From the NCBI RefSeq assembly GCF_000143415.4, contig NW_003314281.1, positions 1,158,481-1,222,480 on the forward strand: a DNA stretch of 64,000 bases, given 5' to 3'. The notes beneath the pieces were generated by a model. It was not told the DNA's origin. It was given only the letters and a program-made list of their open reading frames with translations, and did not search any database. The first letter of the stretch is position 1. Every line of letters begins with the position of its first letter. The position numbers and the translations under genes are program-made. The DNA is from Selaginella moellendorffii. Taxonomy: Eukaryota > Plantae > Lycopodiophyta. Shown one piece after another: positions 2,938-34,050 of this stretch.

Positions 2938-2939
2938 TT

Positions 2940-2950
2940 TGGTATCAGAG
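2940..2950 (+). promoter_or_regulatory. Primer-binding site (tRNA-iMet type)
   Basis: TGGTATCAGAG 2 nt after the LTR-terminal CA; canonical plant PBS. Confidence 0.9.
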
Positions 2951-5777: not shown

Positions 5778-5877
5778 NNNNNNNNNNNNNNNNNNNNNNN
5801 NNNNNNNNNNNNNNNNNNNNNNNNNNNNNNNNNNNNNNNNNNNNNNNNNNNNNNNNNNNNNNNNNNNNNNNNNNNNN
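5778..5877. other. Assembly gap (100 N)
   Basis: N run. Flanks are collinear with 15061-15120, which implies only a few tens of bp are really missing. Confidence 0.95.
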
Positions 5878-7948: not shown

Positions 7949-9095
7949 TGTAGCGCACGTGGTTTTGACCCTTTATCCTATGGTGATTTACCATAGGATA
8001 ACACCACGAAGCGGAACATAAACCCTCTTTGTGCCACGTGACAGATGCCACATGTCACATGCCACGTGTCCGTGCCACGTGTCCATAGGAACCCGAGGTT
8101 CAGGGCCTTGGGCCACTGAACGAAGGAACGGTGCCAAACTCCCAAGCGTGACGCCAAGGAGTGATAGAACCTAACCACGGAGCAACTTCCAAGCATACAG
8201 CCCAAGGAGCGAAGGGACAGGGGCCCGGAGCGACTTGGAATAGTCCTAGAGCAACCAGCATCCCAATGCCAGGACCAGCACGCAAAACGGAGCCAAACAG
8301 AGTCTGGCGCTATTTCGGCATACCAGTGGCCTAACGTGAGAATATGGGTACTCCACCAGCTAGCATGGAATGGAACTTGGGCTTAGACCCAAGCCGGACG
8401 CAGAACAAGGACAGGCACGCAAGCGGGAGCTAGACTATGCCTCAGGTTGGTCGGCCATGCCCGACCTACCCACTATCCCTACTATACATTTGGAACCCCC
8501 CATAGCCCCCCCCCCCCTTGAGGAACACACGCTTTGGGCTTTCACCCCAAGCCTCCCTTAGTATCAAGAGTTAGTCTCTGGGACAAGCTCGAAACTTACT
8601 AAATATGGAATGTTCCTAGATTGCGAATTTGGACATGGGACGAACACCATTGTGTTCAGGCCGATCTCTACATTCCGTAGATATGCCAAATGAGCAAATC
8701 TAGACACTTTCCAGAAATAGCATTTAGGACCGAAATGAGACTAACACAAAGGGCATGATAGCGAGGGTGTTTGGCAGACACGGTAAGCTATCATCTAGCG
8801 ATATTGAGGGACCAAGCTCAATATCGCGGGGGTTCCCAACACTAGCAAGTGCAAGTCAACGAATGAGTTTCTCTAACCAGGTCAAGTATGCTTGACTAAA
8901 TAGACACTTAGGAATTCCTTCCTTATGCTCATCTGGTCAAGTGCACACGCGAGGACCAGTTTCTCAACTAGCTTAGGTGGAGACTGATAACGGGTCCAGC
9001 AATACCGACCTCTTGCCATCGTGGCAATAAGGTAAGAGTGTCCGTAAGGACTAGCCGACAGGTAACTTTCGATACCCAAAGTCACATTCACGACA
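7949..9095 (-). repeat. Family A LTR (right arm, inverted), preceded by inverted PBS at 7936-7946
   Basis: Near-identical reverse complement of 1792-2937; CTCTGATACCA is the reverse complement of the PBS. Confidence 0.92.
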
Positions 9096-11019: not shown

Positions 11020-14000
11020 TGTTGCAAATGTGACTTCGGGTATCGAAAGTTACCTGTCAACCAGTCCTTTCGGATATTCTTTCCTTACTGCCACGACGGC
11101 AGGAGGTTGGTATTGCTGGACCTGTTATTAGTCTCCACCTAAATTAGTTGAGAAACTGGTCCTCGCGTGTGCACTTGACCAGATGAGCATAAGGAAGGAA
11201 TTCCTAAGTGTCTATTTAATCAAGCATACTTGACCTGGTTAGAGAAACTCATTCATTGACTTGCATTTGCTAGTGTTGGGAACCCCCGCAATATTCAGCT
11301 TGGTCCTTTAATATCGCTAGATGATAGCTTACCGTGTCTGCCAAACACCCTCGCTATCATCCCTTTTGTGTTAGCCTCATTTCGGTCCCAAATGTTATTT
11401 ATGGAAAGTGTCCAGATTTGCTCATTTGGCATATCTACGGAATGTAGAGATTGTCCTGAACACAATGGTGTTCGTCCCGTGTCAAAATTTGCAATCTAGG
11501 GACATTCCATATTTAGTAAGTTTCAAGCTTGTCTCAGAGACTAACTCCTGATACTAAGGGAGGCTTGGGGTGAAAGCCCAAAGCGTGTGTTCCTCAGGCG
11601 GGGGAGGGCGGGGGGGGGGGGGCTGTGGGGGGTTCCAAGTGTATAGTAGGGATAGTGGGTAGGTCAGGCATGGCCAACCAACCTAAGGCATAGTCTAGCT
11701 CTCGCTTGCATGCCTGTCCTTGTTCTGTGTCCGGCTTGGGTCTAAGCCCAAGTTCCATTCCATGCTAGCTGGTGGAGTACCCATGTCCTCGTGTTAGGCC
11801 ACCGGTATGTTGAAACAGTGCCAGACTCTATTTGGCTCCGTTTTGCATGCTAGTCCTGGCATTGGGATGTTGGTTACTCTAGGACTATTCCAAGTCGCTC
11901 CGGGCTCCTGTCTCTTCGCTCTTTGGGCTGCATGCTCGGGAGTTGCTCTATGGTTCGGTTCCGTCACTCCTCGGCTCCATGCTTAGGAGTTTGGCACCGT
12001 TCCTTCGTTCAGTGGCCCAAGGCCCTGAACCTCAGGTTCTGCACCACTATCCTTTGGACACGTGGCATATGACATGTGGCATGTGTCATGTGGCATAAAG
12101 AGGGTTTAGGTTCTGTTTCGTGGTGTTATCCTATGGTAAATCACCATAGGATAAAGGGTAAAAACCACGTGCACTACATTTGGTATCAGAGAAGGAGTCT
12201 CAGCGAGTACTATACAATGAGATTGGGCAACTAATCTCGTTGCATACGCAGAGATGAAAACGATGATCCGAGTGGGTACACGTTTGGGTGCTAAGACTTC
12301 GCAATCGTTCCTTGGGTATGGATTTGGTTACCTTTCATTTTAGATTATGTGAGCTTGCTCTTGGGCTCATAAGATGGATTTGAGTTGTTCCGGTAGCACG
12401 AGGTTGAGCTTGAGCTTGTGAGTGAGGCACATTAGCAACTCAAGGTTACGCTTTGGGTTGGCAGGATTAATGTTAGTCTATTGGTGGTTCCATGAGTGGT
12501 TCCAGTGGTTCCATGAGTTATTCCTTGTACCATGGGTGAAACAAACCTCCCTGGGTTTGCTATGAGTGGCAAATAGGCTGGTCCGTAGCTGTTTAGCACG
12601 GCACTAGTGGATCCTTCATAGGCATGATTATAAGTGGATCAATCAAGACTATAGGGATTAGTCTATTGGTTTAAGTAGTCATGGCCGTGCTCTCTCATAA
12701 ACTTTTCTTTGATTGAACTAAAGGCAGTGCAAAAGCAAGCTTGAGGTTTGGTCAAAGATGAGACCGAAAAGAGAGTCATCGGGACGAAGGATCAAACACG
12801 TAAATCATTTTCTCTTCTTGGAGAGATGATTTGCAATGAGGTGTGATTCATTGCTCGTGTTCATAATATGCAATCAAGAGTCCCTATCTTGGTGCATGTT
12901 GGAAATGATAGTCTTACAAATGGTGAGCTATGCGATGGATAGCGGTGAAGCGCTATACTATTTTGTGGCTTGCTATTGAAAGACTTGGGTTGCAATGTTC
13001 AATTCTTTTCCGGGGAACCTTGTTATTGTTTCTTGAGTAGCTTGGTGTTGGATTAGTGTTGAGTTTGGTCGGAAAGAGAGTGTGAGCTTGTTCGTGTTGT
13101 GAACAAAAGTTAGTGGTGTTAGGTGTCGTAAATCTCTATTGATGGGGTGTGGCATTTATGTTGCATTTTGTTGAATCGAGTTGGCACTTGATATTCACAT
13201 AAACCTTTGCAGTAGTGACATGGGCATTGCTCATAGTGTTGCTTGATTGATGATCAAGTTATTGTGATTTATATCATATCTATGTGATAATGAGCAATGT
13301 GTTTACGAAGTTGCTTGGGTAAATGATGATCAACCCCAAAGTGGTTGATAGAGAAGCTAGTCTACTTGCACGAAGTAGCATTGTAGTAGCTTTGACTGGA
13401 TCTCGATGGTGGTCCATTATGCTAAGCTTAAGTTGGTACTTTGTTCCTTGGGTTTGCCCATAAGTTGTTGGAAAGGTTGTAGCATTCATTTGTTATAGCT
13501 CGTCGGTTGATCCGTTAACACTTGGAATAGATTGTTGGATGGAGAAGATGTGTAGTTGGGGCATTAACATCATTAGCACTTGTGTTAGTGGAAGTGGCAT
13601 TGTTATTTCAAGTGATGAGGGATTTTCCTTAGACCTTGATTTTCCATGTCATTTTTCTTGTTAATGTTTTGACTTCACATTGGATCTTGAAGGTGATTGA
13701 AGAAGAGTGTTAGTGCAATATGGATATCCGAACATGTGGTCTACGTGATCAAGCCTTGGATGTTCATTTTGCACTTTGCAGATGTCGGTGTTGGATATCA
13801 GTTAGATGGGCAAAGATGTTCGATGCTTAAGCATATCGTTGGATCATGAGAATTTATGTTGAGGTGAACTTATATGAAGTTGTAGGTAGGAGGAAGTTGG
13901 TTGAGTTTTGAAGGTTTGCAATCCTAGACTGAGAGTCATTCTTTCTCTAGGATGGAAATTTTCCACAAATTTTCTTAGACTTCTCCAATGGCTGATCTGT

Positions 14001-17000
14001 TGGTCACTTTGCTGAAAACCATTCCATTTTCGTAAGCCAATACAAACTAGTGAAGGGGTTAGAGTTGACTTCGGTTAGCTTAGACCTTGGTAAGTGGTTT
14101 GTATAATGCAACCCGAAAGGGATGCTGACTTTTGAGGCTAAGGCAATTGAGTTGGATAGAGTCTAGAGTTGGTATAGAAAAGTGGCTATTGCGCTTTTCT
14201 AAGAAGGGTGACTCTTGTACCTTTCTTTTGTAGCGTTATGCTTAGTGGTAGGTTGCACCTTGCATTACGTTAAACTCTATGAGAGTAGTGAGCTCTCACT
14301 AATCTTGACTTGGTCTTGGTGGCCCTGCACCTTGGTTGAGGATGGTGATGTCCAATTTAGTTGTTTGAGGTTGAGATGTTGGTACCCATACTATAGCTTT
14401 GTCTATGAGGAGGTTGTGTACCAATATGAATCCATCTCATGGTCTTCACTTTAGCTTTAGCTAAGTGTTGATCATGCATAGCTAGCCTCTTCAAGGCATA
14501 CTCAGAGCTATTGACTAAATGCATTAGTGAGCTTATTATGATTGAGTTGGATTCGAGTGGTCATATAGTTTGTGCTTGTCTATGAACTTTTATCTCATAC
14601 CTGAGGTATTATGTTCATGTTGGACAAGTATATGACTCGATGACATGAATTGGTGTTCGGGTCTTGTGAAGGCAAGTTGAAGGGTGATTGTTAGTTGCTT
14701 TACGACTAGTGATTACTTGTAGACTTTGTCAAAAGACTATTGATACTTGCTTCGCTCGATGATGATTTAGCAGTGATGGGTTTGCTTTACTGGATGGTAT
14801 TGTGGAGGATCGTGTTGTTAGACTTACATGGGTTTTCCATGTTGGCATATCAATTCTACCTTTGTCGATATCATTTGGTTGCGTTTAAGTTCGTAGTGTT
14901 AGATTTCATTGAATTTTGGATGTGGTGATTCATTCCTTGATGATGTGTTATCTATAGCTAAGTATTGTTGAAGAACTGGTCTTAAATACTGCCTAAAGTA
15001 TCTTCGACTTTAGTTAGCTTGGTTGCTAAAGAGTTTTGGGTGGTGATTCACTCTTGCTTTCTTCTAGCTTTGTTATGGTGTTGATGGCATTGAAGTGATG
15101 CCTTGTCATTGACATTATTGATGTTGAGATTCGAGTGAAATGAGATATCTCTGTAGGATTGATATTGAGTTTCATTAGTCTTGATGAAGATAGTGTTGAT
15201 GATTTGGCTGTAGCTTTGTGTTGTTAGCATTCATGTATTTGCTAGTTAGCAACTGTATTGACGTTCAGATGAACTGAATAGCAAGTTTGAGTTAGTTGTG
15301 TTCTAAACGAGATTGTTTAGTAGGGGCTGAGCTTTAAGCTTTTCCTTGAAAAAAGTGATTTAGTTATAGACTATGCTAACTTTACAAGTGGAAGAGTTAG
15401 TGATCAATATTAGAATATTTGAATCCTTGTTAGATTTGAGTTGGGATATATTGATCATTGATGATTTGTGTTGTACTTGTTATGAAGTGAGTTACGTCTT
15501 GCTATAGATGGATTCATGGAAGATCGATTGGGTGATCACTTGTTTAGCATAACTTCGTTATGCTTAGCTATTGGATTGATGCAGACATGCTCTTCATTAA
15601 CTTTGGCATTATGAAGTTAGCTTATGGATGTGTTGAGTAAGATATTATGGGTTATACCACGATTTCTTCTTTAGCATTGAAGTTAGTTCATGCAAGACTT
15701 ATGATCATTATAGACAAAGACCTTATGTATAAGCTTCTTCAAACTTTTGGTTCTTTGAGTTTTTATGCTCAATGTTCCATTTGTTAGAAGTTGTTGGGGA
15801 AGGCATTTTGGCTTATTAGCTTTGATATTGTTAGTATTTGCATCTAGCATTCATTGGTAATAATTGACTATCATCTAAGATAATTGATTATCTTTATCAA
15901 AGGTTTTGTTTGATTATTGTTGGTATAAAATGATTTGCCGTTCTTCGGAATGGTAGATTGTTTCTTTGACGATGATTTTGCATTTTTGTTTTATGGGATG
16001 GTTGATGATCTTTTATGATGGTTAATTGTTCTCTTTGATAGCTTATAGCTTTTCGCAATACCATAAGTTGTTTGTGGTTTGCTCTGGATTGGTCTCTTGG
16101 GTTTGAGACATCAGTAGGACATTGCTAACACTTGTTTAAGCAACTCTGGTTCCTTGGTATTATTGACTGGGATCTATTCAGATTGACTTGTGTGATGGTT
16201 GGCATAACTAAATGTTTGTTGGTTTTACCACATTCATTTTGTTTTGTTGATTATTGTTCAAGTTAGTTCTAATAGATTGGGATGTTATTTCCTTTGAGTG
16301 ATATATTTGCGAGCATTTTGTTTGTCAGTCAATGATCCTTAGTGTTTTTTGAGTTATCTTTCGTAAGTTATTTAGCATATTGTCTACAATCTTTGATAGT
16401 TAAGTTTTCTTATTGAGTTTACTTGATGATATCCTTGCTATTGAATTTTGTTTAATGGTGAATCCTATGTTTACCAATTATGGTGATCTTGGTGGATTCT
16501 ATAATTAAGACTCAAAACTATCATTGTCTATGACTTTGGTATTGTCCATCTATTGATCTTTGAATTTGGGCTAGTATAGGCAGACTGGCTTCAGCACTTC
16601 GTGTGCATATTGAAATCTCTAGTCATGGGGTAGTTATTGTCGATTGGTCACATAACCCGCCTCTTTGTTGATGTTCCTTATTCCGTTGAAAGGGCGTGAT
16701 CGTCTAAACAACTCTAACTGCCTGTTTACAGTAGTCTATCTAAACCTTACCGACAGGTTTGGTTTCTTTGCTCAGGAGGGTTGGGGCCTCTGGCTCCTCT
16801 CTCTATGTCCTTGCGGGCAAGGGCGTATCACACTTTTATAGCTGAGTGACACCCAAAGCAGCAAGGGTGGCTGACTCTGTTGGTCATTTCCTTGTCGGTG
16901 ACGGCCGCAAGGTGTCTGAGTTGGTAGCGCATCCGCGTTAGACAAAGAGGTTACCCCCTAACTCATTTAAATGGGTGCATTTCTCACATAGTGTGAGTAT

Positions 17001-18217
17001 TATGAACTTTTTCTGGAGTTATTTCCTTGGCGGTATTCTAGACTGGAGTATGCATCGACGAGGACGTCGATTTTCCCCAAGGGGGGGAGAGTGTCACGAA
17101 TGTGACTTCGGGTATCGAAAGTTACCTGTCGACCAGTCCTTTCGGATATTCTTTCCTTACTGCCACGACGGCAGGAGGTCGGTATTGCTAGACCCGTTAT
17201 CAGTCTCCGCCTAAGTTAGTTGAGAAACTGGTCCTTGCGTGTGCACTTGACCAGATGAGCATAAGGAAGGAATTCCTAAGTGTCTATTTAGTCAAGCATA
17301 CTTGACCTGGTTAGAGAAATTCATTCATTGACTTGCACTTGCTAGTGTTGGGAACCCCCGTGATATTGAGCTTGGTCCCTCAATATCGCTAGATGATAGC
17401 TTACCGTGTCTGCCAAACACCCTCGCTATCATGCCCTTTGTGTTGGCCTCATTTCGGTCCCAAATGTTATTTATGGAAAGTGTCCAGATTTGCTCATTTG
17501 GCATATCTATGGAATGTAGAGATTGTCTTGAACACAATGGTGTTCGTCCCGTGTCCAAATTTGCAATCTGGGGACATTCCATATTTAGTAAGTTTCGAGC
17601 TTGTCCAAGAGACTAACTCTTGATACTAAGGGAGGCTTGGGGTGAAAGCCCAAAGCATGTGTTCCTCAAGCGGGGGGGGGGGCTGTGGGGGGTTCCAAAT
17701 ATATAGTAGGGATAGTGGGTAGGTCGGGCATGGCCAACCAACCTAAGGCATAGTTTAGCTCCCGCTTGCATGCCTGTCCTTGTTCTGCGTTTAGCTTGGG
17801 TCTAAGCCCAAGTTCCATTCCATGCTAGCTGGTGGAGTACCCATGTCCTCGCGTTAGGCCACCGGTATGCTAAAATAGTGCTAGACTCCGTTTGGCTCCG
17901 TTTTGCATGCTGGTCCTGGCATTGGGATGTTAGTTACTTTAGGACTGTTCCAAGTCGCTTCGGGCTCCTATCCCTTCACTCCTTGGGCTGCATGCTCGGG
18001 AGTTGCTCCGTGGTTCGGTTCTGTCACTCCTCGGCTCCATGCTTGGGAGTTTAGCACTGTTCCTTTGTTCAGTGGCCCAAGGCCCTGAACCTTGGGTTCT
18101 ACACCACTGTCCTTTGGACACGTGGCATATGACATGTGGCATGTGTCATGTGGCATAAAGAGGGTTTAGGTTCCGTTTCATGGTGTTATCCTATGGTAAA
18201 TCACCATAGGATAAAGG
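11020..18217 (+). mobile_element. Non-autonomous gypsy-like LTR element (family A) with normal direct LTRs
   Basis: 5' LTR 11020-12178, PBS TGGTATCAGAG ~12181-12191, PPT AAGGGGGGGAGAG 17079-17091, 3' LTR 17092-~18217 (last ~20 bp lost). Inserted into the LTR of the old host copy. Confidence 0.9.
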
Positions 18218-18665
18218 ATAACCACGAAATGAAATCTAAACCATCTATATGCCACATGTCCCCAAGGACAAAAAAGTGAAACCTGAAATTCAAGGTCTTG
18301 GGCCACTAAATGAAGGAACAGAGCCAAACTCTTAAGCATGGAGCTAAAGAGTGAAGGTACTAAAGCACGAAACAACCCCGAGCATATAACCTAAAGAACA
18401 AAAGGATAAAAGCATAGAATAACTTGGAACAATCCTAAAGCATTTAGCATCCCAATGCTAAAACCAGTGTAAAATAGAGCCAAATAAAATTTGGCATTAT
18501 TTCAGCATATTAGTGCCCTAACACGAGGATATGAGTAACATAATGTGAAACTTGGGTTTAAACCCAAGCCAAATGCAAAATAAAAATATTTATGCAAGTG
18601 AGAGTTCAATTATGCCTCAAGTTGGTCGGCCATACCCAACCTATCCATTATCCCTACTATACATA
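18218..18665 (-). mobile_element. Remainder of the old host copy's LTR (decayed, truncated)
   Basis: Collinear with 8003-8490 and continues the LTR broken at 11019. Confidence 0.8.
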
Positions 18666-18757: not shown

Positions 18758-19922
18758 GACATGTGGCGAGTGCATATATTAATCCAACACATAGACAATC
18801 CAATTAACTTAAGCCAGTGAAGGGCGAAGATATCATTTCATTGGTTTCTAGTGGAGCGCTCGTTGCCTTGGTGCTCTTAGGGATTTTGTGGTGGAAGGTG
18901 GTGAGACGATCCAATGCCACCAAGAAGAAGCTCCATCAGGGGGATCTCACTGATAGGTACCAAGAGCTGTACCGAGCAAGGGATTCCAGAGCAAGGTGGG
19001 AGAGGGAGGGTTTGGGACTGTGTTCAAGGGGATGCTGCCCAGCAGAGAGATTGTGGCGGTCAAGAGGATTGGCGGTGGATCGCGGCAGGGGGACAAGCAA
19101 CTTAAGGCGGAGGTGATGTGGATTGGCAGCATCCATCACCTCAATCTCGTAAAGCTGGTTGGATTTTGCCTGCAGTCTCCCCCCAACGTACTTGTCTACG
19201 CCAATGGCTTGCTGGATGGATGGATTTTTGCCAAGGACAAGTATCTGCCCTGGGCAACCAGGCTATCCATCGTGCTCAACGTCACTCGAAGGCTTGCATA
19301 TCTCCACGATGGATGCCACAAGAAGGTACTCCATCTAGACATCAAGCCCCAGAACATCCTCCTGGACGAGAAGATGAATGCCAAAATTGCCGACTTTGGA
19401 TTCTCCAAGCTCATTGACAAGGACAAAACTCATGTCGTGACAGTCATGTGGGGCACAGTGGGATACATGGCTCCCAAGTGGCTCCACTCTCGTGTCACGG
19501 ACAAGACGGACGTCTATAGCTTTGGGATCGTCCTCCTGGAGCTCATGTCCTGCATGAAGGCCGTGGAGTATCCCTCGGACTCACAGATGCACGTTGGGTT
19601 CCTCGCCCAGACTGCTTTCAACAAGCTCGACAGTGGAAACGCCATGCACTTGGTGGATGATCGGCTGGTCAAAGCCGAGGACGGTGGTGGTTTATTGAGT
19701 GGCTTCGAGAACATCATCCGGATCGGGCTATGGTGTGCACAGGAGGATCCTTTGCAGCGACCAACGATGTCTGTGGTGGTGAAGATGCTCGAGGGTGCCA
19801 TGGATGTGTTGGCGTTCCCTCAGCTGGAGAGACCCGCTGCACAGGATTCATCACTCCTGGTGAGCAGCAGCGAGAGCTCGGGATTGCAAATCTCCATCTC
19901 GGTCTCTGACTTGGCTCGCTAA
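18758..19922 (+). pseudogene. 5'-truncated receptor-like kinase (TM + non-RD kinase), paralog of kiwellin-RLK-B
   Basis: TM LVALVLLGILWWK is in a different frame from the kinase ([21 protein letters not shown]). APE is APK and there are small deletions. Sequence matches the reverse complement of 23465-24243. Confidence 0.82.
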
Positions 19923-20459
19923 GTAGATATCTGAAGAATTATGATTGCTTAATAAGTTAATTGAACGGCAATTTACATATATATTTAGAATCCTCAATGA
20001 GAAACCAGGAGGTCTCGAGGCGGAAGATCTGGAGGAGTTCAGCAAATGGCTCAAGAATCATCAAGAGAAACGGCAAGACCTTATAAACAAGTAATGAATG
20101 AATGAGGTATATAAACACACACGGCACGGCGATGGCAACCCTAAAAGTGGAAATGACGGCAATGACAGCAATGCTGGAAGAATTGTACATGCAGCAGCAC
20201 TGCATTCAATTCATGGCTAGAAATCACCAATCTGCCACTTCTCTTTCTTTTTCATGAAAGACCAATGTTGATTTCAGAGTCAGAACAATAAATTTAAAAC
20301 GTAGAATTCTTGCTGTGAAATTAGGTGAAGTGGTAGTAAAAATGAATTAAAAATATTGTGGGTCCACAACAAAGTTCACTGACTAATAAATAAAAATAGA
20401 TGAGCTATTTATTAGTCTTAAAATCTTTTCATATGCAAGCATTTCCAATCTAGCTGCCA

Positions 20460-21240
20460 TAGTCTTGGATCTGGCATCCCATAACTCAGCATCCTGTAGC
20501 TCATGATCAATAAGAAGGTAGTTAGATCCCACGTAGAAGTCCATGTTGCATTCATTGTTCTTCTCCTTGTCTTTCGTGCAGGCATCATCCACCCGAACAC
20601 ATCCATTCTGCCGTTGGAAAGCGCTAAGTCTTGGAGCAGATCTATCTTGAGATGTGATCCAAAGGGATACTTCCCTTCATCTGGAACAGCTATAGACACG
20701 TAAAGCTGCAAGTCGTTCCCTCGACTGCCCTTGGGACCATCAGTCACAGAGTAGTAGGTGCAATCGTTGTCTTCACAATTCACGTAGCGCCCATCCTTCA
20801 ACCTTCTAGGACCCTTCGTGGATTTCTGAACTGAAACCGCCACAGACGGAAGCTATCGCGTTGTCATTGCAATCCTTGATTTCTGTGTTTGAGGCCTCGT
20901 TGCCGCACTCCTCTACAGTCCAGTAGTACGTCTCTGGCTGCCTCCACTGAGAATCCCAGAGCCATGCAAGCGAAAAAGAGCACAAGAGAAGCGGAAGATC
21001 GATGATTTTTAGCCATGAATGAATGCAGCGCTGCTGGCTGTATAATTCTTGCATGACCTCGGAGCACTAGCTTTTATAGGAGCCATGCATCGCCGTGCGG
21101 TGTGGTGTGTGTATACCGCATCTGTTGTGGGACCACCAGCCAGGTGCAATCGTCGTCTTCACCCTCGACGTGGCCTCGTTGGTGCTCCTCGGGAGTCCAG
21201 TAGTACGTGAAACTTTCGCTGGCTGTCTCCACTGAGAATC
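20460..21240 (-). pseudogene. Secreted 3D-domain-like protein, frameshifted copy plus upstream partial duplicate
   Basis: ATG at 21016 (MAKNHRSSASLVLFFACMALGF); ~8-bp deletion after AAR and further frameshifts; paralog of 22399-23262. Confidence 0.75.
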
Positions 21241-21566
21241 CACGAAGAAAGATCTGCTGCAATGATACATGGCTGGAATTGCAAACCTCTCGCGGGTAAA
21301 CTGCTCTAGCAAAAGTCTGAAGTCTTTTGCGGTCTCATGTGGAGCTAGACTTGTCAGGCTTTTGACTTTCTAAAGCATTGCGAGGGTCCCGTGGGAGGAA
21401 TTGCTCTTTTAGTCTGCCAGCCCAAAAAAACCTTGACACTGAAAGATACCTCCGAACTTTAAGTCTTTGGGCCGAAACGAACTAATGAGACTTACATGAT
21501 GTCATAGTCTAGTCTCTGACTTTCTATGGTTTCCAGGTGCCCAAGAACAATGGTATTTACTAAACT

Positions 21567-22016
21567 ATGGAGGTGTCGATTCTCTGTGCTTCATGGTCGT
21601 GCTATGTAGCATCCACTCGCAAGCCCAACAACAGGTATGCTCTTCGTTAAGCGACTGCCTGAATGGATCTCTTTGTTTCCTGGAGCGTTCACTCCAGACT
21701 GCTTTCAACAAGCTCGACAGTGGAAACGCCATGGGTCAAAGCCGAGGACGGTGGTGGTTTATCCTTGAGTGGCTTCGAGAACATCATCCGGATCGGGCTA
21801 TGGTGTGGACAGGAGGATCCTTTGCAGCGACCAACGATGTCTGTGGTGGTGAAGATGCTCGAGAGTGCCATGGATGTGTTGGCGTTCCCTCAGCTGGAGA
21901 GACCTGCTGCACAGGATTCATCACTCTTGGTGAGTAGCAGTGGCTCGGGATTGCAGATCTCCATCTCGGTCTCGGACTTGGCTCATTTGAAGAATTATGA
22001 TTGCTTAATAAGTTAA
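21567..22016 (+). pseudogene. Chimeric RLK fragment: 5' end of kiwellin-RLK-A fused to kinase 3' end of RLK-B type
   Basis: 21567-21695 matches 25126-25283. From 21695 it matches 19607-19920 (TAFNKLDSG...IGLWC...SDLA). Confidence 0.8.
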
Positions 22017-22398
22017 TTGAACGGCAATTTACATGTCTCGAAGCAGAAGATCTGGAGGAGTTCAGCAAATAGCTCAAGAGATCATCGAAACTGGCTGCAA
22101 GACCTTATAAACAACCAATGAATGAATGAAACCACTTTAAGTGTTGGCAGGTGCGACGGAGATGCCAACCCTAAAACTGGAAATGACGAATGCTGGAAGA
22201 ATTGTACAGCCAGCAGCACTGCATTCAATTCATGGCTAGAAATCACCAGTCTGCCGCTTCTCTTTCTTTTTCGCTAAAAACCAATGCTGATTTCAGAATC
22301 AGAACATTTAAATTGTTGCTGCTAAGAGATAAAAATAGATGAGCAGTTTATTAGTCTTAATAGGAAACCAAATCTTATAATATGCAAGCATTTCCAAT

Positions 22399-23262
22399 CT
22401 AGTCTTGGATCTGGCAGTTCGGATCAATATTGGCATCCCATAATTCAGCATCCTGTAGCTCATGATCAATATTAAGGTAGTTACTCTCAGATCCCACGTA
22501 GAAGTCCATGTTGCATTCATTGTTCTTCTCCTTGTCTTTCATGCAGGCATCGTCCACCCGAACACATCCATTGTGTTGCCTGCCGTTGGGAAGCGCTATG
22601 TCTTGGAGCAGATCTATCTTGAGATGTGATCCAAAGGGATACTTCCCTTCATCTGGAACAGCGATAGACACGTAAAGCTGCGAGTCGTTCTCTCGACTGC
22701 CCTTGGGACCATCAGTCACGAAGTAGGTGCAATCGTTGTCTTTGCAATTCACGTAGCGCCCATCCTTCAACCTTCCAGCACCCTCGACGTGGATTTCTGA
22801 ACTGAAACCGCCACAGACGGAAGCTATTGCACTGCCACTGCAATCCTTGATTTCTGTGTTTGAGGCCTCGTTGCACTCTCCTCTACAGTCCAGTAGTACG
22901 TGAAACTCTCTCTGGCTGCCTCCACTGAGAATCCCAGAGCCATGCAAGCGAAAAAGAGCACAAGAGAAGCCGAAGATCGATGGTTTTTCTGTACAATTCT
23001 TGCATGACCTCGGAGCACTAGCTTTTGTAGGAGCCATGCATCGCCGTGCCATGTGGTGTGTGTATACCGCGTCTGATGTGGGACCATCGGCCACGGAGTA
23101 GCAGGTGCAATCGTCGTCTTGCTTTCCAGCACCCTCGACGTGGCCTCGTTGGCGCTCCTCTGGAGTCCAGGAGTACGTGAAACTCTCTCTGGCTGTCTCC
23201 ACTGAGAATCCTAGAGCCAAGCAAGCGAAAAAGAGCACGAGAGAAGCGTGATTTCTAGCCAT
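22399..23262 (-). CDS. Secreted protein with C-terminal 3D (MltA/DPBB-like) domain; open but rearranged reading frame
   Basis: 287-aa ORF: signal peptide MARNHASLVLFFACLALGFSVETA, then motifs EGAGRLKDGR, YVSIAV, YPFGSHLKI, HNGCVRVDD, MDFYVG. The middle is an out-of-frame second N-terminus, so functionality is uncertain. Confidence 0.6.
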   Translation of the reverse strand: MARNHASLVLFFACLALGFSVETARESFTYSWTPEERQRGHVEGAGKQDDDCTCYSVADGPTSDAVYTHHMARRCMAPTKASAPRSCKNCTEKPSIFGFSCALFRLHGSGILSGGSQREFHVLLDCRGECNEASNTEIKDCSGSAIASVCGGFSSEIHVEGAGRLKDGRYVNCKDNDCTYFVTDGPKGSRENDSQLYVSIAVPDEGKYPFGSHLKIDLLQDIALPNGRQHNGCVRVDDACMKDKEKNNECNMDFYVGSESNYLNIDHELQDAELWDANIDPNCQIQD

Positions 23263-23448
23263 GAATTGAATGCACTGCTGCTGGCTGTACAATTCTTCCA
23301 GCTTTTCCAGCTTCCAGCCATGCGTTGCTGTGCCTGTTGTCATAACATGAAGATTCAGCAACTGAACTCGTACCAACATCAGCATTGGTCTTTCTTGCTA
23401 ATAAAAAGAAGTTTTTGACGAAGCAAATGTTTAAGTCATATTCATTCA

Positions 23449-24866
23449 TTAGTTGTTTATAAGCCAGAAGCCGAGCTTGTTGAAAGCAGTCTGGGCGAGG
23501 AACCCAACGTCCATCTGTGAGTCCGAGGGATACTCCACGGCCTTCATGCAGCACACGAGCTCCAGGAGGACGATCCCAAAGCTATAGACGTCCGTCTTGT
23601 CCATGACAAGAGAGTGGAGCAACTCGGGAGCCATGTATCCCACTGTGCCCCGTGAGTTTTGTCCTTGTCAATGAGCTTGGAGAATCCAAAGTCGGCAATT
23701 TTGGCATTCATCTTCTCGTCCAGGAGGATGTTCTGGGGCTTGATGTCTAGATGGAGTACCTTCTCGCGGCATCCATCGTGGAGATACGCAAGCCCTCGAG
23801 CGACGTCGGGAAAGCCTGGTTGGCCAGGGCAGGCACTTCTCCTTGGCAAAAATCCATCCATCCAGCAAGCCATTGGCGTAGACGACTACGTTGGGGGGAG
23901 ACTGCAGGCAAAATCGAACCAGCTTGACGAGATTGAGGTGATGGATGCTGCCAATCACCTCCGCCTTAAGTTGCTTGTCCCCCTGCCGCGATCCACCGCC
24001 AATCCTCTTGACCGCCACAATCTGTCCGCTGGGCAACGTCCCCTTGAACACAGTCCCAATCCCTCCCTCTCCCACCTTGCTCTGGAATCCCTTGCTCAGT
24101 GAGATCCCCCCGATGGAGCTTCTTCTTGGTGGCATTGGATCGTCTCACCACCTTCCACCACAAAATCCCTAAGAGCACCAACTAGAAACCAATGCAATCA
24201 CTGGCTTAAGTTAATCATGCGTTGGATCAATATGCCACATGTCTTAATGGTTGCGCCGCCCTTAACCTCTTCAAATGACTTGCAACACATTATCAAAATA
24301 CGTCTGGCCCAGCCCTTCCCACACACCTCTCGTCCCTCCCAACGATCTGGGCGTGCACGGCTCGTAGTATCCGCCACCGTCGCCGTGACGCTCATCCCAT
24401 TCTCTGCCGTGATCACAATCTCTTTGAAGCACGAGGATCCACTGGCAAACCATCCGGTGGCCATGTTTGCCAGGAGCTCCGAGTTCTTGTAAGGCGTGGA
24501 TTGATTGCATGCCGTGGGGAGTTCCTCCAGCTTGATGTAGTAGAAAGCCGCGAAGTTGAGAGACTGCTCTTCAGGGGAGCAATTGAAGAACTGATAGATG
24601 TTGTTGCCGATGCAGTACTCGGGATTGTGGGCAGTGGCATTCGAGTTGACGAAGGTCTTGCCGGGCTCGCAGCCGGGAATTGGGCAGGAAAGGGTGCTAG
24701 CTCCTGGATCGCCATCGTAGGTCTTGCTAACAGGATTGCAAACGAGGCCGCTAGAACAATCGCGCCTAGAGTCGCATCTCGTGCCGCAAGAGGAGGAGAA
24801 TTGCTGCGCGGTGGCGCTGGCGAGTGAGGTCATCGCTGGCGCGAAGAAAGTGCTGCAATGATCCAT
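23449..24866 (-). pseudogene. Kiwellin-RLK-B (kissper/kiwellin ectodomain + TM + non-RD kinase), frameshifted and 3'-truncated
   Basis: CDSRRDCSSGLVC, FNCSP, ATGWF...C.K.I.ITAENG.SV.A.VAD; then in another frame PCTPRSLGGTRGVWEGLG; TM VLLGILWWK; kinase motifs split over three frames. Confidence 0.82.
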
Positions 24867-25125
24867 GGCTGGAATTGCAAAAGGTAAACTGGTTTAAACG
24901 CTGAAGTCTTTGCGGTCTCAAGATCGAAGCTTTTGACTTGTTAAAGCATTGCGGGTCCCTTGGAGGAATTCCTCTTTTCGTCTGCCATCCCAGAAAAACC
25001 ATGACACTGAAAGATACCTGAAGCCAGCTGCCAAACATTAAGTCTGTGACGAGAGAGACGTGATCTCATAGTTTCTGATTTTCTATGGTTTCCAGGTGCC
25101 CAAGAACAGTGGTATTTACTAAACT
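24867..25125. promoter_or_regulatory. Putative bidirectional promoter between the two kiwellin-RLKs
   Basis: 259 bp between divergent ATGs (24866 and 25126); a second copy lies at ~21270-21566. Confidence 0.55.
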
Positions 25126-27045
25126 ATGGAGGTGTCGATTCTCATGTGCTTCATGATTGTGCTATGTAGCACCAGGAGCTTCCACTCGCAAGCCCAACAA
25201 CAGGTATGTTCTTCGTTAAGCGACTGCCCGAATGGATCTCTTTGTTTCCCGGAGCCCATGCTCAGCGGCAACCGTTCACTCCGCAATTCATCCTGCTACC
25301 TATCGAACAATCAATCCGAGCCATATCTCAGCGATTCTGAAGCTTGCAAGCCCATCTCCAGCGTCATTTTCAATGCCACCATCGGTCCAGACTGCCCGAA
25401 TTGCTGCGTCCCAGGCCTGGCTTACAGGTATTTCACCTGCTCTCCAAATTTACAAGGGACCAACAATGCCGTCCTCTATGTCACAAGCTTCAACCTCTCA
25501 AATCCGGGGTCTCTCAGGCCGTGCACGTCCTCGGAATGGAATAGGGAACCCATGGCAGCGCTGGCCACTGGATGGTATAGCCAAGACCGAAGCTTGTGCT
25601 CGAAAAACATCCAAGTTTTAGCTCCAAACGGACGGACTGCGGTGGCTAGAATGGTGGCTGAATGCTACTCCCCAGACGGGTGTCTCAGGGATCATTCGTT
25701 CACGGAGCCCTGTGCTCCAAACGCTGTGGCTGCGAACGAGCAAGTGTGGAGGCAGCTTGGGTATGATCCAGGCATTGGAATCTTGAGAAATATCACCTGG
25801 AATGTCATTGATATGAATCTTCCACAGTCCATTCGAAGCAAAAAGAATTATCTGGGAGTGATCTCTGGGGTAGCAAGCGCTGTGGCCGGGGTGGTGCTTA
25901 GCGTCGTAATCTTCGTAGCAACCAGGAAGTGGAGAAGATCTCGGAGGAGGCGCATGGAAAAGCAAGCGCTCATCGAAGGAATGAGGCTCGATGAGATACT
26001 TCCGCACCAGTTTAGCTATCACGACTTGAAGATGGCAACTAGAAACTTTGATCCCGAGCTCATGCTTGGAGCTGGAGGATTTGGATCCGTCTTCAAAGGA
26101 GAGCTTGCGGATGGGAGCCTCGTTGCTGTGAAGAAGATGGACGTAGAGATCCAAGGCTCGTCGAAAGGACACTCGCAGTTCAAGGCCGAGGTAATGTCCA
26201 TTGGCAGCATTCACCACTTCAACCTGGTAAAGCTCCGGGGATTTTGCATCCAGGGACCAGCTGCATTGCTTGTCTACGAGTTCATGCCCAATGGATCACT
26301 GGACAAGTGGATCTTCACCAAGAACGATGATGACAAAGGTGGCGGATCAGCAAATCTGCTGTTAAACTGGAACCAGAGACACTCAATCGCGATAGATGTT
26401 GCTCGAGGACTCACATACCTCCATGAAGGATGCCGGGAGCAAGTTCTTCACCTGGATATCAAACCTCAAAACATCCTCCTGGACGAGAACTTACGAGCCA
26501 GAATCTCCGACTTTGGCCTGAGCAAGCTCGCCGAGCGGGGAAAGAGCCAAGTGGTGACTGTCATGCGAGGAACTCCCGGATACATGGCACCCGAGTGGCT
26601 CCACACTAAAGTCACGGACAAGACCGACGTTTACAGCTTTGGAATCGTGCTGCTCGAGCTCGTCAGCTCCAAGCGGACCATCCAGTTCCATCCTCCATCC
26701 TCCTCTTCCTCCTCATCCTCCTCGCAACCGCGCTTCCTGGGCGAAACCGCGCTGAGCATGTTTCACAGTGGCAACGTCGTCGAGCTTATTGACGACAAGC
26801 TCCTGGACGATGATCTCGCCAGCACTAGCACTGGCTTGGAGCTCAAGGATGCCGAGAGGTACGTGAAAATCGGACTGTGGTGCATCCAACTCGAGGCAGC
26901 AATCCGCCCCTCCATGAGAAACGTCCTGGATATGCTTGAAGGTAACATAGACGTTCTTGACTTGCCACCACCTTCAAGTGATGGTAGCTCCAGAAGCTTC
27001 AGCTTGCGACTACCTGGATCCTACTTCAGCTCCACTCGTCTGTGA
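25126..27045 (+). CDS. Kiwellin-ectodomain receptor-like kinase (non-RD), 639 aa, intronless
   Basis: Signal peptide; CSSLSDCPNGSLC (kissper-like); FTCSP, ALATGWY, C.KNI.V.A.NG..A.A..V.EC.S..GC..DH....PC, VW..LG, ITW (kiwellin/ripening-related); TM then RKWRRSRRRR; [31 protein letters not shown] all intact. Confidence 0.92.
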   Translation: MEVSILMCFMIVLCSTRSFHSQAQQQVCSSLSDCPNGSLCFPEPMLSGNRSLRNSSCYLSNNQSEPYLSDSEACKPISSVIFNATIGPDCPNCCVPGLAYRYFTCSPNLQGTNNAVLYVTSFNLSNPGSLRPCTSSEWNREPMAALATGWYSQDRSLCSKNIQVLAPNGRTAVARMVAECYSPDGCLRDHSFTEPCAPNAVAANEQVWRQLGYDPGIGILRNITWNVIDMNLPQSIRSKKNYLGVISGVASAVAGVVLSVVIFVATRKWRRSRRRRMEKQALIEGMRLDEILPHQFSYHDLKMATRNFDPELMLGAGGFGSVFKGELADGSLVAVKKMDVEIQGSSKGHSQFKAEVMSIGSIHHFNLVKLRGFCIQGPAALLVYEFMPNGSLDKWIFTKNDDDKGGGSANLLLNWNQRHSIAIDVARGLTYLHEGCREQVLHLDIKPQNILLDENLRARISDFGLSKLAERGKSQVVTVMRGTPGYMAPEWLHTKVTDKTDVYSFGIVLLELVSSKRTIQFHPPSSSSSSSSSQPRFLGETALSMFHSGNVVELIDDKLLDDDLASTSTGLELKDAERYVKIGLWCIQLEAAIRPSMRNVLDMLEGNIDVLDLPPPSSDGSSRSFSLRLPGSYFSSTRL

Positions 27046-27244: not shown

Positions 27245-28150
27245 TCATAAAATCTGAAGTTGGGTTCTACCTTCATTGCCCATGGCCAGCAATGACTTAC
27301 TAAAAACCTGTGATCCAAATCTCCTGCCTCAGTAAGAGAAATGAAAGTACGAAGTGCCGGGTTACCTTCTCAATGGGGATTTCATGTCGCTTGCACCAAG
27401 CGACTGTTCTTTGAGGATCCTTGTAGTTGATCTTTGACGTTCCCAGTGCCACGATATGAGATCTTCTTTGACGGACAGATCCAAGGTCATCTTGGCTATC
27501 CTTGCATCAGTTTGAGCCAACTTCTTTTCCAACCTAATAGTCAAAAGTAGAAACTACTTACAGTTCTGCGGTTGGAGGCCTTTTAGCCGTGGTGTGAACT
27601 GGATGTTTGCCCTTTTCAACTTTCCCCAAGTTCCTCACGCAGTGTCTGCCAATAGCAAAGCATCAGCCTCAAACAAACCATAAAGAAAAACGGACCTTTA
27701 ACTCTGCAATCTTTGCCTCCATTCTTTCCATCTGAGCACTATAGCCCTTGGATACTGTCCATTGATGATTACATGGAATCGTGACTTGTCAAAAAAGTGC
27801 TAACCAAACAGAATGTTCTCTTACCTCCTTATTTGCTTGGGAGTATTCTGCAGTTTTCTCGTTAAGAGTCACACCAAGCATCTCCGTCAACTGTAACAAG
27901 TAATTTTTCAGATCATTTTGGCCTTGACAAAGTAAAAGTCACCTGTGCTGTTCAGATGGGCATTAAGATTAGAAGTATCTAACTTATCAAAGAGGTCAAC
28001 CCCTTCCTTTTTCCTTGTGTAACAAACAACTCATCTCAATGAGGACAGCACAAGTCACAACATACCTTTCTTGAAATAGTGTATAGCATCATATACCTCT
28101 TACAGAGTTTTGATACCTGGTGGAATCTTTACCCAGAAAATCAAATTGTA
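27245..28150 (-). pseudogene. TOP1: DNA topoisomerase IB C-terminal fragment with introns
   Basis: Exon pieces FDFLGKDS, LFDKLDTSNLNAHL, CNHQWTVSK..AQM, LEKKLAQ...KEDL / [37 protein letters not shown]. It has frameshifts, lacks the TAKVFRTYNAS segment and is cut off at the 5' end by a gypsy remnant. Confidence 0.85.
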
Positions 28151-30830: not shown

Positions 30831-33674
30831 GATGGGAAAAATTTTCAACTAAAAATGCCATACTCATATATGTATATATAAAACCATCCTTTTATACCCC
30901 TACCCTTACCACTTTACTATTCTACCACCACCTTTTCTTTATGACTTAATATTTGAAGTCAAAGTAAAAAATAAGTCAAACCAAATCCTTTTAGGACTAT
31001 TCTTTCCTTTTTATATTTTATATTTATTCTATTACTCATCCACCTTACTCTATCACAAACCTTATTTTCCACCACCTTTATAAAATGATTTGCATATATA
31101 ACTCCTACATTTAAGTATATCCTCTAATATTGCAAAGAGTTCTGCCACCATTTTAAAATATTTTCTTATGTAACCTATACATTAAAAATGGTCATCTAAA
31201 TCTACCACCTTTAATACATTAATATTTTATGATATCAACAACAAAATATAAAATATAGTCCAAGGACTATATAAAGAAGAGCCCCTCACGACACCAAAGC
31301 ATTAGAACATGGAATGTGGAGTGATTCTAACCTAAGTTTTCTCTTCTAGTTTTATAATATTCTTTTTTTGAGTCATACTTAAAAAATATAAAAATTAAGA
31401 CTTAGTAGAAATCCCTCTCCTCTCTCTTTCTCTCAAGGCACAAAGCATATAGAGATGATGTGTTACTAGCCACTAATTTCAGACATGACAATCAGATGAA
31501 ATAGAATACAAGTGCAATGAATCTTCAGAGTATAATAGTATAAGGTTGTCAGATCCTGTCAAGTCATCATCCTGTTTCACATCCTCCTCTATTTCTTCAT
31601 TCCCTTCGGTAGTTTCAATATGGCTACTTGAGTTGTTAGTCTCAATAATAGCTATTACAACAGACTGTTTAGAGGCTTTCCTTGAAGGAGCTCAAGATAC
31701 TAATTTTACTGACAATCCTAATGGATCAAGAATATTTATAGAAGTTGAAGAATCAATAGGATCTTTATTAACTCTTTTACCAAAAGATTTACTCTTGATC
31801 ACGTCACCGTCTTAAAAAGCATCTAATGGAGTATGAAATATAGATTATGGAGGAGATCATATAGAGTCTTGCTATAGAGAAATTGTAACATATGTGATCA
31901 TGGGATTAGATTTGGATATATTATTACTATGAATCTTTGGAATTTTAGGTGATAAATAGGGATAAAATAGCCATTAAAGGCTCTCTCATCAAGTAATTGC
32001 TCATTTTATAGTTAGTTTAACATAACATACTATATGGTATCAGAGTAAATGGTATGGGTTTAATCACTATTATATTTATTTGGCATTACTATATTAGTGT
32101 AAAATGTTCTGTTTAGAGTCACTATACTCATCCTTACTCCATAATTTATATTATTTATCCTCACTTCACTATCATATTTATACATTTTCACTCCACCATT
32201 ACTTATGTATATCCTCTTTACCTACTCTAAAGACAAAAAAAAAAAAGTTTAAAGCATTGGGGCAAAAAGGAGAAATCATGAAAAATTGAGAAAGAAACAT
32301 TATGGAAAAAGAGAAAGTGGATAAAAACGCATCGAAAGAGGAATTTTCAATAAATGTCAAGCTAGAAATGGGAAAATAAAAAAATACTTAAATCAATAAG
32401 AAAAAACCTTTTTATAAGCTCCAAAATTTAGGCTTCAAACCAAAGAACACTTAATCCCATTAACCGATTAAAAAAAGGGGAAGGGTTGCATTTTTATTTA
32501 TGGGCTCTTTCCTTTTATATTTGAACCTTTTATAAATCATCTTTTGAGCATTTGTTTTGGTTACTAAGCCTTTAAAAGAAATGTACTTTTATTCATGGGC
32601 CTTTTTTCTTTATATTTAAACTTTTTATGGATCATTGTTTTGTTATTCTCTTTGGTTACTTACACTTCTATTATAAAAGACTATTTAAGTAGAAAAGTTG
32701 GATAATAAAGGATATTTTGTTATAAAATATGTTGGCCAAAACAAAAAAGCAAAAAGACTCAACCACATCAATTTAAAACTCAACACTTGAGACAAGAAAT
32801 TAAAGGAAAATTCCACACTTTTAAAGGAACAAAAGAAATTTTTAACAATAATAGTAAAATAAAGATTATTAGTGACATATACAATCTTTGGGGAAACTTA
32901 CTTAACTCAAAACTTTGACAAAAGTGACTTAACCCTTGAAACAATAGAATACTCAAAATTCATCTAATCAACTTGTCAAGAGAAGAAAATATTGTAGATA
33001 AAGAAAAAACAAAAAGAATATGAAAAGGTTGCTCAATTTAAGAAATAAAAATGGTTGAGAAGGCAAAAAGAAAATACTCAATAACAAATTGAAAGATTGA
33101 TACTTGATAAAGTTTTTAACTCATCTCTAGCTATCTTTATAATAATCAAGCCATTCATCACAATTCAAAATCCATTCAAGTTTATATATTTTTTTTTCCT
33201 ATTGTGAGGGCCAAGTGTATGGCTATGATGCCATATGCTAATATTAGCGTAGTGAGATTTTGGTAGTTGTTGGATTAGTTTCAGTCCAAACCACTTGCTC
33301 CTGTATATAAATTAGGGTCTACATCTAACATTTTCCATTTCCTTTTTTTTGTTCTTTCCTTTTAGGATTTTAGTTTTGATCTAGCTTTACATTGTCTAGA
33401 TCTCCCTTTCCTTCTAGCTTTTAGTCATTTCTCTATTTTTGCTCTTTGTGAGACATAAAATCCCTAGGCCCCAAAGTAGAGCCGAAAGGGTGCCACGTGG
33501 TAATGGCCGAAGCAAAAGCCAAACGAGCATAACACGTTTAGACTAAAAGCTTCGGCTTGAAGGGTTGAGAGCGGGAGTGGAACTCTCAATGATGTGCTCG
33601 AGGAACAACCATGAAGCAAGCAATAAATGAGTCTTTAAAAAAAGGACACAAGAGGACCAACACATGACATGTGG

Positions 33675-34050
33675 AGGAGTCCGAGATGGAGTCTAAGATG
33701 GACCCGAGATGGAGTCCAAGATGGAGTCCGAAATGGACCCGAGATGGACCCAAGATGGAGTTCGAGATGGACCCGAGATAGAGTCCGAGATGGACCCGAG
33801 ATAGAGTCCGAGATGGAGTCTGAGATGGAGTTCGAGAAGGACCCGAGATGGAGTCTGAAGTCAAGATCAAGATCGGGACCGGGACCGGGACCAAGACCAA
33901 GACCAAGACCGAGACTGAGACCGGGACTAAGACCGAGACCGAGACCGAAGCCGAGGCCGAGACTAAGCCCAAGCCCAAGCCCGAGTCCAAGTCCGAGTTC
34001 GAGTCCGAGTCCGAGTCTGAGTCCAAGTCTGAGTTCGAGTTTGAGTTTGA
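33675..34050 (+). repeat. LTR-internal minisatellite (GAGATGGAGTCC/GAGATGGACCC) grading into CCGAGA/CCGAGT hexamers
   Basis: Directly visible tandem units. Confidence 0.9.

Follow-up and report, generated by a model that had tools for sequence, protein, structure and literature searches.

The closest described counterparts of the locus reported here are the plant immune receptor clusters, whether of RLK/Pelle kinases or of NLRs, with which it shares tandem and inverted duplicates, chimeric fragments, frequent pseudogenes, retroelement-rich flanks and a single intact gene among dead ones; it differs from them in that its receptors bear a kiwellin ectodomain and a non-homologous secreted gene has been copied along. 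Known kiwellins (Pfam KWL1), such as the maize protein ZmKWL1 that binds the Ustilago effector Cmu1, are free secreted proteins, whereas the kiwellin domains at this locus, of which both types (A and B) pass the KWL1 cut-off, are joined via a transmembrane (TM) helix to a kinase. A literature search found no paper on kiwellin-ectodomain receptor kinases. The small secreted protein recalls the 3D-domain lytic transglycosylases MltA and YuiC in its fold, its aligned aspartate motifs and the Thr/Tyr/Asp/Asp set of the intact paralogues, from which its activity is predicted. Unlike MltA, however, it is eukaryotic, secreted and Cys-rich and is devoid of the inserted domain B; furthermore, in place of the Gly-rich loop that follows the second aspartate it has a loop bounded by cysteines and variable in length, and the Selaginella proteins fall short of Pfam PF06725.

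Two further systems resemble the locus in gene layout. In the Brassica S locus the receptor kinase SRK is linked to SCR, the gene of a small Cys-rich secreted ligand, and here, too, an SD-type kinase adjoins a gene for a small secreted Cys-rich protein; the likeness is one of gene layout. The small gene is dead here, and block duplication accounts for the linkage. As in the RGA4/RGA5 NLR pairs with an integrated decoy, two diverged receptors stand head to head, 259 bp apart, and carry a domain that is normally a free defence protein, but they are cell-surface kinases and not NLRs, and, B being a pseudogene, their pair is non-functional at this locus.

The window, a 64,000-nucleotide stretch of a 2.3-Mb scaffold of Selaginella moellendorffii, contains these genes within an 8-kb stretch at 18.8–27.0 kb. 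The sole intact kiwellin-ectodomain receptor kinase there is of type A; the three type-B kinase copies (K1, K2 and K3) are all broken, the two kiwellin ectodomains are those of type A and K3, and both loci for the small secreted 3D/MltA-like protein are pseudogenes. All items of the inventory drawn up in the sequence-only reading (one intact and three broken receptor kinases, two kiwellin ectodomains, two 3D loci) were found, with coordinates slightly corrected. Pieces of broken genes were never joined; each fragment was searched separately against reference proteins. The features are as follows:

17092–17971, no strand, LTR-like repeat abutting the left edge of the cluster; third copy of its family (others at 1792–2669 and 11020–11911)
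18817–19922, plus strand, K1, type-B kinase remnant with TM segment and kinase
18868–19629, left arm of an inverted repeat (K1), with its partner at 23472–24181 (K3); 95.9 % identity, K2P 0.042
19607–21241, tandem unit 1: type-B kinase 3' end, spacer and 3D copy 1
20453–21016, minus strand, 3D/MltA-like copy 1, pseudogene; signal peptide intact, then at least four frame changes
21185–21241, minus strand, partial 3D 5' fragment of unit 1, residues ~21–39
21243–21686, plus strand, copy of the A/B intergenic promoter and the first ~46 codons of the type-A receptor (P0013 residues 7–46 at 75 %)
21669–21983, plus strand, K2, type-B kinase, final ~110 codons only (P0023 residues 280–387 at 68.5 %)
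21694–23211, tandem unit 2
22402–22988, minus strand, 3D/MltA-like copy 2, pseudogene by comparison with the intact paralogues
23080–23262, minus strand, partial 3D 5' copy, internally deleted, supplying the ATG and signal peptide of a 287-aa ORF
23449–24866, minus strand, K3, type-B kiwellin receptor kinase pseudogene with kiwellin ectodomain and kinase, 3' end missing
24867–25125, no strand, head-to-head intergenic region of 259 bp between K3 and the intact receptor kinase
25126–27045, plus strand, intact type-A receptor kinase of 639 aa, identical to P0013

The tandem duplication of a kinase 3' end together with a 3D gene, proposed from the sequence alone, proved to be real. The two units pair as 19607–20294 with 21694–22314 and 20383–21241 with 22322–23211, with an aligned identity of 92.3 % (K2P 0.081) and 21 indels, 13 of which are not multiples of three. 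Two features go beyond what the sequence-only reading listed, the inverted repeat and the promoter copy. The arms of the inverted repeat, ~710–760 bp each and 3.8 kb apart, differ by four indels, three of them not multiples of three, and the promoter copy at 21243–21686 aligns with 24842–25255 at 89.8 % identity. Identities of this order over hundreds of bases cannot be put down to chance. Homology to the kinases is lacking in 18758–18817. LTR-like repeats lie on both flanks of the cluster, the copies of the family at the left edge being 92–94 % identical (K2P 0.065–0.078). Recent duplicates, pseudogenes, chimeras and repeat-rich flanks bear out the earlier view of a birth-and-death cluster between retroelement repeats. 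Capture of the duplicated unit by a transposon was considered and rejected, as no terminal repeats flank it.

The intact type-A gene encodes, in one ORF, a signal peptide, a kiwellin ectodomain, a TM helix and a non-RD kinase of the SD-2b type. Its ectodomain matches Pfam PF24300 (KWL1) with 80.2 bits (cut-off 27; E=2e-22) over positions 37–199 of the 202-position model, and its kinase is recognized as Pkinase with E=1e-42. The features of an RLK/Pelle SD-2b-like non-RD receptor are all present, namely the signal peptide, the TM helix, the Lys/HxD/DFG/APE motifs and the lack of an arginine before the catalytic aspartate; the catalytic loop reads HLDIKPQN. The closest named kinases are SD2-5, At5g20050 and RLK-Pelle-SD-2b. 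Because a non-RD kinase is combined with a kiwellin ectodomain, the protein is most likely a cell-surface receptor of the immune type, as judged from its sequence. The region separating it from K3 is presumed to function as a bidirectional promoter.

Type B shares with type A ~50 % identity in the kinase and ~27 % in the ectodomain; the reference for type-B comparisons was the nearest match, P0023, itself a dubious truncated model. In K1, which has neither signal peptide nor ectodomain, the TM and juxtamembrane segment lies in one frame and the kinase in another (18996–19922; Pkinase E=1e-37), and the incomplete gene model P0024 (177 aa) spans 18999–19529. K2 lies downstream of the type-A 5' fragment, to which it is fused as a chimeric remnant. 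K3 keeps its ectodomain in frame to ~24372, with frame changes at ~24372, ~23808 and ~23650; the ectodomain scores 31.8 bits against KWL1 as a 222-aa ORF and 28.7 bits as the in-frame 165 aa (cut-off 27). RefSeq models K3 as P0035 ('PERK10', 351 aa), a model that omits the TM helix and the catalytic loop. The non-RD nature ascribed earlier to the kinases agrees with the HLD found in type A, in K1 and, though it is broken, in K3.

Both 3D copies are disrupted. On copy 1 the tblastn match of the intact paralogue P0001 is split over frames -1, -2 and another, with stops inside the alignment. Copy 2 has its own start codon within a ~28-nt deletion, its frame shifted by a 10-nt deletion after codon 40, the conserved Cys94 codon lost, a stop three codons early and the T-Y-Y-W strand out of frame with the body. 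The 287-aa "3D" ORF at 22399–23262 is a read-through chimera, in which the signal peptide of the partial 5' copy is followed by a complete C-terminal 3D body, and some product may be expressed from it. None of six broken ORFs of the window, the 287-aa one among them, was present in the protein collection on exact look-up. Copies 1 and 2 differ at 14, 13 and 13 sites in codon positions 1, 2 and 3, respectively; 22 of the codon changes are non-synonymous and 7 synonymous. Read from these sequences, both copies are dead and appear to have drifted neutrally since the duplication, because the differences are spread evenly over the codon positions.

The identity of the small protein was established by profile search and fold comparison. 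Pfam PF06725 (3D) gave no match with the 3D ORFs of the window even at E<=10 and none with P0001 at E<=0.01, and a search of PDB sequences with a four-sequence profile likewise gave no match. A profile search retrieved 458 relatives, the best named ones and the closest outside Selaginella being from entomophthoralean fungi, and PF06725 was matched by 18 of 57 profile-detected relatives (best E=1.7e-15). The AF2 model of P0001, built on a 57-sequence alignment (pLDDT 91.6), was matched by Foldseek to MltA with probability 1.00 and E=9e-5, and superimposed on it with Z 10.3 and an rmsd of 4.0 over 160 residues, compared with Z 7.8 for YuiC and 5.7 for kiwellin. Its predicted fold marks the small protein as a divergent member of the MltA/3D double-psi beta-barrels (DPBB), and the earlier assignment of both protein types to DPBB folds is upheld, for the kiwellin by Pfam and for the small protein by these scores. 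YuiC is also matched at E=5e-4 with the aspartate motifs aligned. The catalytic set comprises the catalytic aspartate (D308 in MltA, D162 in YuiC), the Thr/Tyr that orient it (T99 in MltA, T91 and Y93 in YuiC) and a second aspartate (D297 in MltA, D151 in YuiC), with the residue roles taken from PMC4499186. Residues T32, Y34, D153 and D168, corresponding to T91, Y93, D151 and D162 of YuiC, are invariant in the intact Selaginella reference paralogues (P0001, P0002, P0003 and P0012), as are ten cysteines, and are retained in 51–56 of the 57 relatives. Since the intact paralogues keep this catalytic Thr/Tyr/Asp set, they most likely act as secreted proteins cleaving glycans of the peptidoglycan or chitin type. 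In ten long relatives that were examined, the only fusion partners were domains that act on cell walls (M15 peptidase, LysM, deacetylase, GH18), and no fusion to a kinase or kiwellin was seen. The literature search on 3D genes in plants yielded nothing relevant.

According to protein records, 3D genes and kiwellin receptor kinases share scaffolds of 261 kb, 1.16 Mb and 1.89 Mb; on the smallest of these their gene numbers (431484/431485) and UniProt accessions (D8TCT5/D8TCT6) are consecutive. The type-A receptors on four scaffolds are 94–96 % identical, and the copy on the 1.89-Mb scaffold is the most divergent for both the receptor and the 3D gene, as expected for block copying. Further truncated members are P0004, P0008, P0009, P0010 and P0023. 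The check proposed earlier, whether the two gene types are neighbours elsewhere, thus shows three other shared scaffolds. Because these loci are 94–96 % identical paralogous copies of one block, the linkage is most likely a single inherited event and not an association that arose repeatedly. The most probable explanation is that the locus is a paralogous copy of a gene block of Selaginella, rearranged and in decay, and that the gene types became neighbours through joint copying, the gene order and intactness at the other loci being taken from protein records and scaffold lengths. The full block would comprise head-to-head kiwellin-ectodomain kinases A and B beside the gene of the small secreted MltA/3D-like protein. 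Here the B kinase would have undergone an inverted duplication and its 3' end, with the 3D gene, a tandem duplication, and many small deletions would then have left the type-A receptor as the sole surviving gene; the order of these rearrangements is inferred, not reconstructed. What the window holds is one further decayed copy of the block and not a new kind of thing. A lineage-specific kiwellin/non-RD-kinase receptor and a foreign-looking MltA-like secreted gene spread and decay together, and the case urges caution in inferring gene clusters, since a neighbourhood seen repeatedly within a genome can go back to one inherited event.

The sequence-only reading had suggested an enzyme-and-sensor module, in which the small secreted protein would generate the ligand of the kiwellin-ectodomain receptors or act as that ligand itself. 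Linkage would then be kept for co-inheritance as in SRK/SCR, and the dead copies would be served in trans by intact paralogues. Such a module is improbable. It draws support from the three shared scaffolds and the adjacent gene numbers, from the catalytic residues and ten cysteines kept in the intact paralogues, from the kinship of the SD-2b-type kinase with S-domain kinases and from the domain fusions of the 3D relatives, which make a glycan-fragment product plausible. At the locus itself, however, not all partners are intact: the two 3D copies and every B receptor are dead and evolve by neutral drift, so that this copy could not serve such a module, and the linked loci count as one event. 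Furthermore, the scaffolds of P0003 (3D) and of the receptor kinases P0007, P0011 and P0022 returned no partner in a word search, in which type-B kinases were not queried genome-wide, the long 3D relatives lack kinase or kiwellin fusions, and no paper linking kiwellins with 3D proteins was found in the literature search. Slightly less probable again is a fuller version in which the MltA-like protein and the type-B and type-A receptors of the intact loci work together as an immune module of three genes. The 3D enzyme, fungal in type and perhaps acquired horizontally, would free microbial wall fragments or imitate a DPBB protein of microbes; the signal would be read by the pair of kiwellin receptors, linkage would be kept as in SRK/SCR, and the window would hold a dead spare copy. 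If true, a module at the intact loci would add a novel pair of ligand and receptor to plant immunity, a reading that the present evidence does not favour.

Small-RNA loci in plants are known to arise from inverted gene duplications. The inverted kinase duplication, whose arms are 96 % identical and whose loop contains an A/B promoter copy directed towards unit 2, might give a long hairpin whose small RNAs dampen type-B paralogues, with the convergent arrangement of K2 and 3D adding antisense pairs; the arms, however, decay by indels like neutral DNA, and nothing sets the locus apart from an ordinary by-product of rearrangement, which makes a regulatory-RNA locus very unlikely. The published S. 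moellendorffii assembly, which contains both haplotypes, raises the possibility that the duplicates are mis-joined haplotypes, but the copies differ by 4–11 %, by many indels and in structure, far above allelic expectation, and distinct junctions mark the inverted and the tandem arrangement. An assembly artefact is extremely unlikely and was rejected because the copies are too divergent. Against the general picture of a decaying block copy stand two points: K1 keeps an uninterrupted kinase ORF of 308 aa, and the 287-aa ORF keeps both its signal peptide and its 3D body.

Open reading frames, Pfam and comparison with references place one intact and three broken receptor-like kinases (RLKs), two kiwellin ectodomains and two loci for a small secreted double-psi beta-barrel (DPBB) protein, the 3D protein, within the cluster, as had been proposed from the sequence alone. 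The pieces of broken genes were left unjoined and each was compared singly with a reference, P0001, an intact S. moellendorffii paralogue encoded elsewhere, serving for the 3D copies.

Features of the cluster (window coordinates)
18817-19922, plus strand: K1, type-B RLK remnant, TM and juxtamembrane parts in one frame, kinase in another
20453-21016, minus strand: 3D copy 1, broken, at least four frame changes needed
21243-21686: copy of the A/B intergenic promoter with the first ~46 codons of type A, K2 joined behind
21669-21983, plus strand: K2, type-B 3' remnant, last ~110 codons only
22402-22988, minus strand: 3D copy 2, broken, four defects
22399-23262, minus strand: 287-aa read-through ORF, beginning in a partial, internally deleted 3D copy (23080-23262)
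23449-24866, minus strand: K3, type-B kiwellin RLK, broken, frame changes near 24372, 23808 and 23650
25126-27045, plus strand: intact type-A RLK, 639 aa, identical to P0013

The type-A ORF carries a signal peptide, a TM helix and the full set of kinase motifs, and matches the Pfam families KWL1 (kiwellin, E=2e-22) and Pkinase (E=1e-42). HLD replaces HRD, so that this kinase is of the non-RD class, as previously read. All remaining kinase pieces in the cluster belong to the divergent type B, which shares ~50 % identity with type A in the kinase and ~27 % in the ectodomain. K1 retains an uninterrupted 308-aa kinase ORF and lacks the ectodomain. K3, which stands head to head with the intact type-A gene at a distance of 259 bp, has a kiwellin ectodomain (Pfam, 31.8 bits against a cut-off of 27) and is without the 3' end of the kinase; its RefSeq model, P0035 ("PERK10", 351 aa), leaves out the TM helix and translates the region of the catalytic loop in the wrong frame. 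P0035 and the other annotated type-B protein, P0023, look like gap-bridging models of pseudogenes. No intact type-B reference was found by word search within its length limits. The N-terminus of P0023 matches the C-terminal part of the kiwellin region when this is read in a wrong frame.

Both 3D copies are likewise defective. In copy 2 the native ATG falls inside a ~28-nt deletion. A second deletion, of 10 nt past codon 40, leaves the body in another frame than the signal peptide and the T-Y-Y-W strand; in addition, conserved Cys94 has lost its codon and the stop comes three codons early. The 287-aa ORF at 22399-23262, formerly taken as the 3D gene, does not hold as such: it starts in the partial upstream copy, whose signal peptide it uses, and reads through scrambled sequence into the full C-terminal 3D body in the same frame. 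It has no entry in the protein collection by exact look-up, and may be a chimeric product or just a frame in which no stop codon has arisen so far. Differences between copies 1 and 2 are spread over codon positions 1, 2 and 3 as 14/13/13; of the codon changes, 7 are synonymous and 22 non-synonymous. This pattern indicates neutral drift of the two copies.

Pfam gave no match to the 3D ORFs of the window, even at E≤10, and a word search returned no proteins other than P0001-P0004, which are from S. moellendorffii and 132-205 aa long; the further paralogue P0012 joined the set through a cluster look-up. A profile of four intact sequences, run against 1.84 billion representatives, gave 458 relatives, 116 of them at E≤1e-10. 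The best named ones come from Entomophthora muscae, Conidiobolus coronatus and Neoconidiobolus thromboides, some being annotated as 3D-domain proteins, and 18 of 57 relatives passed Pfam 3D. The AF2 model built from the 57-sequence alignment (pLDDT 91.6) gave a Foldseek list headed by MltA enzymes (probability 1.00); by VIA-align, Z was 10.3 for MltA (rmsd 4.0, 160 aligned) and 7.8 for YuiC, and about 5-6 for kiwellin, barwin and expansins. The family profile also matched YuiC (E=5e-4) with the Asp motifs in register, P0001 residues T32, Y34, D153 and D168 being the counterparts of YuiC T91, Y93, D151 and the catalytic D162 (roles according to PMC4499186). All intact Selaginella proteins share these four residues, which are nearly constant across the family too. 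Profile, Pfam on relatives, fold and YuiC residues thus justify both the name 3D protein and the recognition of two DPBB types. The intact paralogues may plausibly act as enzymes.

Bacterial 3D domains have a Gly-rich loop past the second conserved Asp. In P0001, P0002 and P0003 a Cys-bounded loop takes its place, with ~11 residues in P0001 and 4 in the other two; it may be a fast-changing site of substrate or partner contact. The closest non-plant relatives (P0142, P0144, P0146 and P0148, ~30-35 % identity) belong to insect-pathogenic and saprobic Entomophthoromycotina, a kinship compatible with horizontal transfer.

The sequence-only reading had suggested that the secreted 3D enzyme makes, or is, a ligand sensed by the kiwellin-ectodomain receptors. 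At this locus such a module finds no support, since both 3D copies are broken and drift neutrally and the type-B kinases are broken. Ten long 3D relatives have M15 peptidase, LysM, polysaccharide deacetylase, GH18 or RHS domains as partners, and none of the ten is fused to a kinase or kiwellin. Linkage elsewhere was read from protein records that give identical scaffold lengths, the DNA-level reading being that of this window.

Scaffolds carrying both gene types
261,321 bp: 3D gene P0001; RLKs P0005, P0009 and P0010
1,161,766 bp: 3D genes P0012 and the internally deleted P0004; RLKs P0015 and P0008
1,886,115 bp: 3D gene P0002; RLKs P0006, P0016 and the B-type P0023

3D genes and kiwellin RLKs occur together on three scaffolds, and on the first the numbering of a 3D gene and an RLK is consecutive (genes 431484/431485, UniProt D8TCT5/D8TCT6). 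However, the type-A RLKs of four scaffolds are pairwise 94-96 % identical (two pairs with P0006, 88-90 %) and the most divergent copy in both gene families lies on the 1.89-Mb scaffold, from which it follows that the loci are copies of one block and that the linkage counts as a single event. The searches run found no kiwellin RLK on the scaffold of the 3D paralogue P0003, and no 3D gene on those of the RLKs P0007, P0011 and P0022; many 3D and kiwellin RLK records are truncated members. A module among the intact paralogues is a speculation to which we give little credence. No description of kiwellin-ectodomain kinases or plant 3D genes was found in the literature searched. These components are unusual; the locus is an ordinary decaying duplicate.

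Comparison of the region with itself by blastn reproduced the tandem duplication of kinase 3' end plus 3D gene at the coordinates read earlier (19607-20294 with 21694-22314; 20383-21241 with 22322-23211), and showed an inverted pair, 18868-19629 against 23472-24181 on opposite strands. In global alignments the tandem units differ by K2P 0.081 with 21 indels, the inverted arms (96 % identical, 3.8 kb apart) by 0.042 and the A/B promoter copy by 0.110; K2P of the flanking LTR-like repeats is 0.065-0.078. Duplicates, chimeric K2, broken copies and these repeats agree with the birth-and-death cluster envisaged before. If transcribed, the inverted kinase duplication could yield a long hairpin RNA. 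The loop between its arms holds the copy of the A/B promoter.

Upstream, at 1792-18664, lie two retroelement-like body copies with ~9.2-kb spacing and three LTR-like repeats (1792, 11020 and 17092), together with a 68 % palindrome at 17699-18664; downstream there is a direct repeat pair with 5.2-kb spacing (33446-40610). Ordinary genes (ArfGAP, MYB-CC, AAA/FtsH-like) begin only beyond 49 kb. On the minus strand at 27300-27452, 250 bp beyond the 3' end of the intact RLK, a 50-aa ORF matches the domain at the C-terminus of topoisomerase I (Pfam Topo_C_assoc, E=8e-13). It may be the final exon of a whole gene with many introns in the AT-rich stretch at 28-34 kb, or only a fragment.
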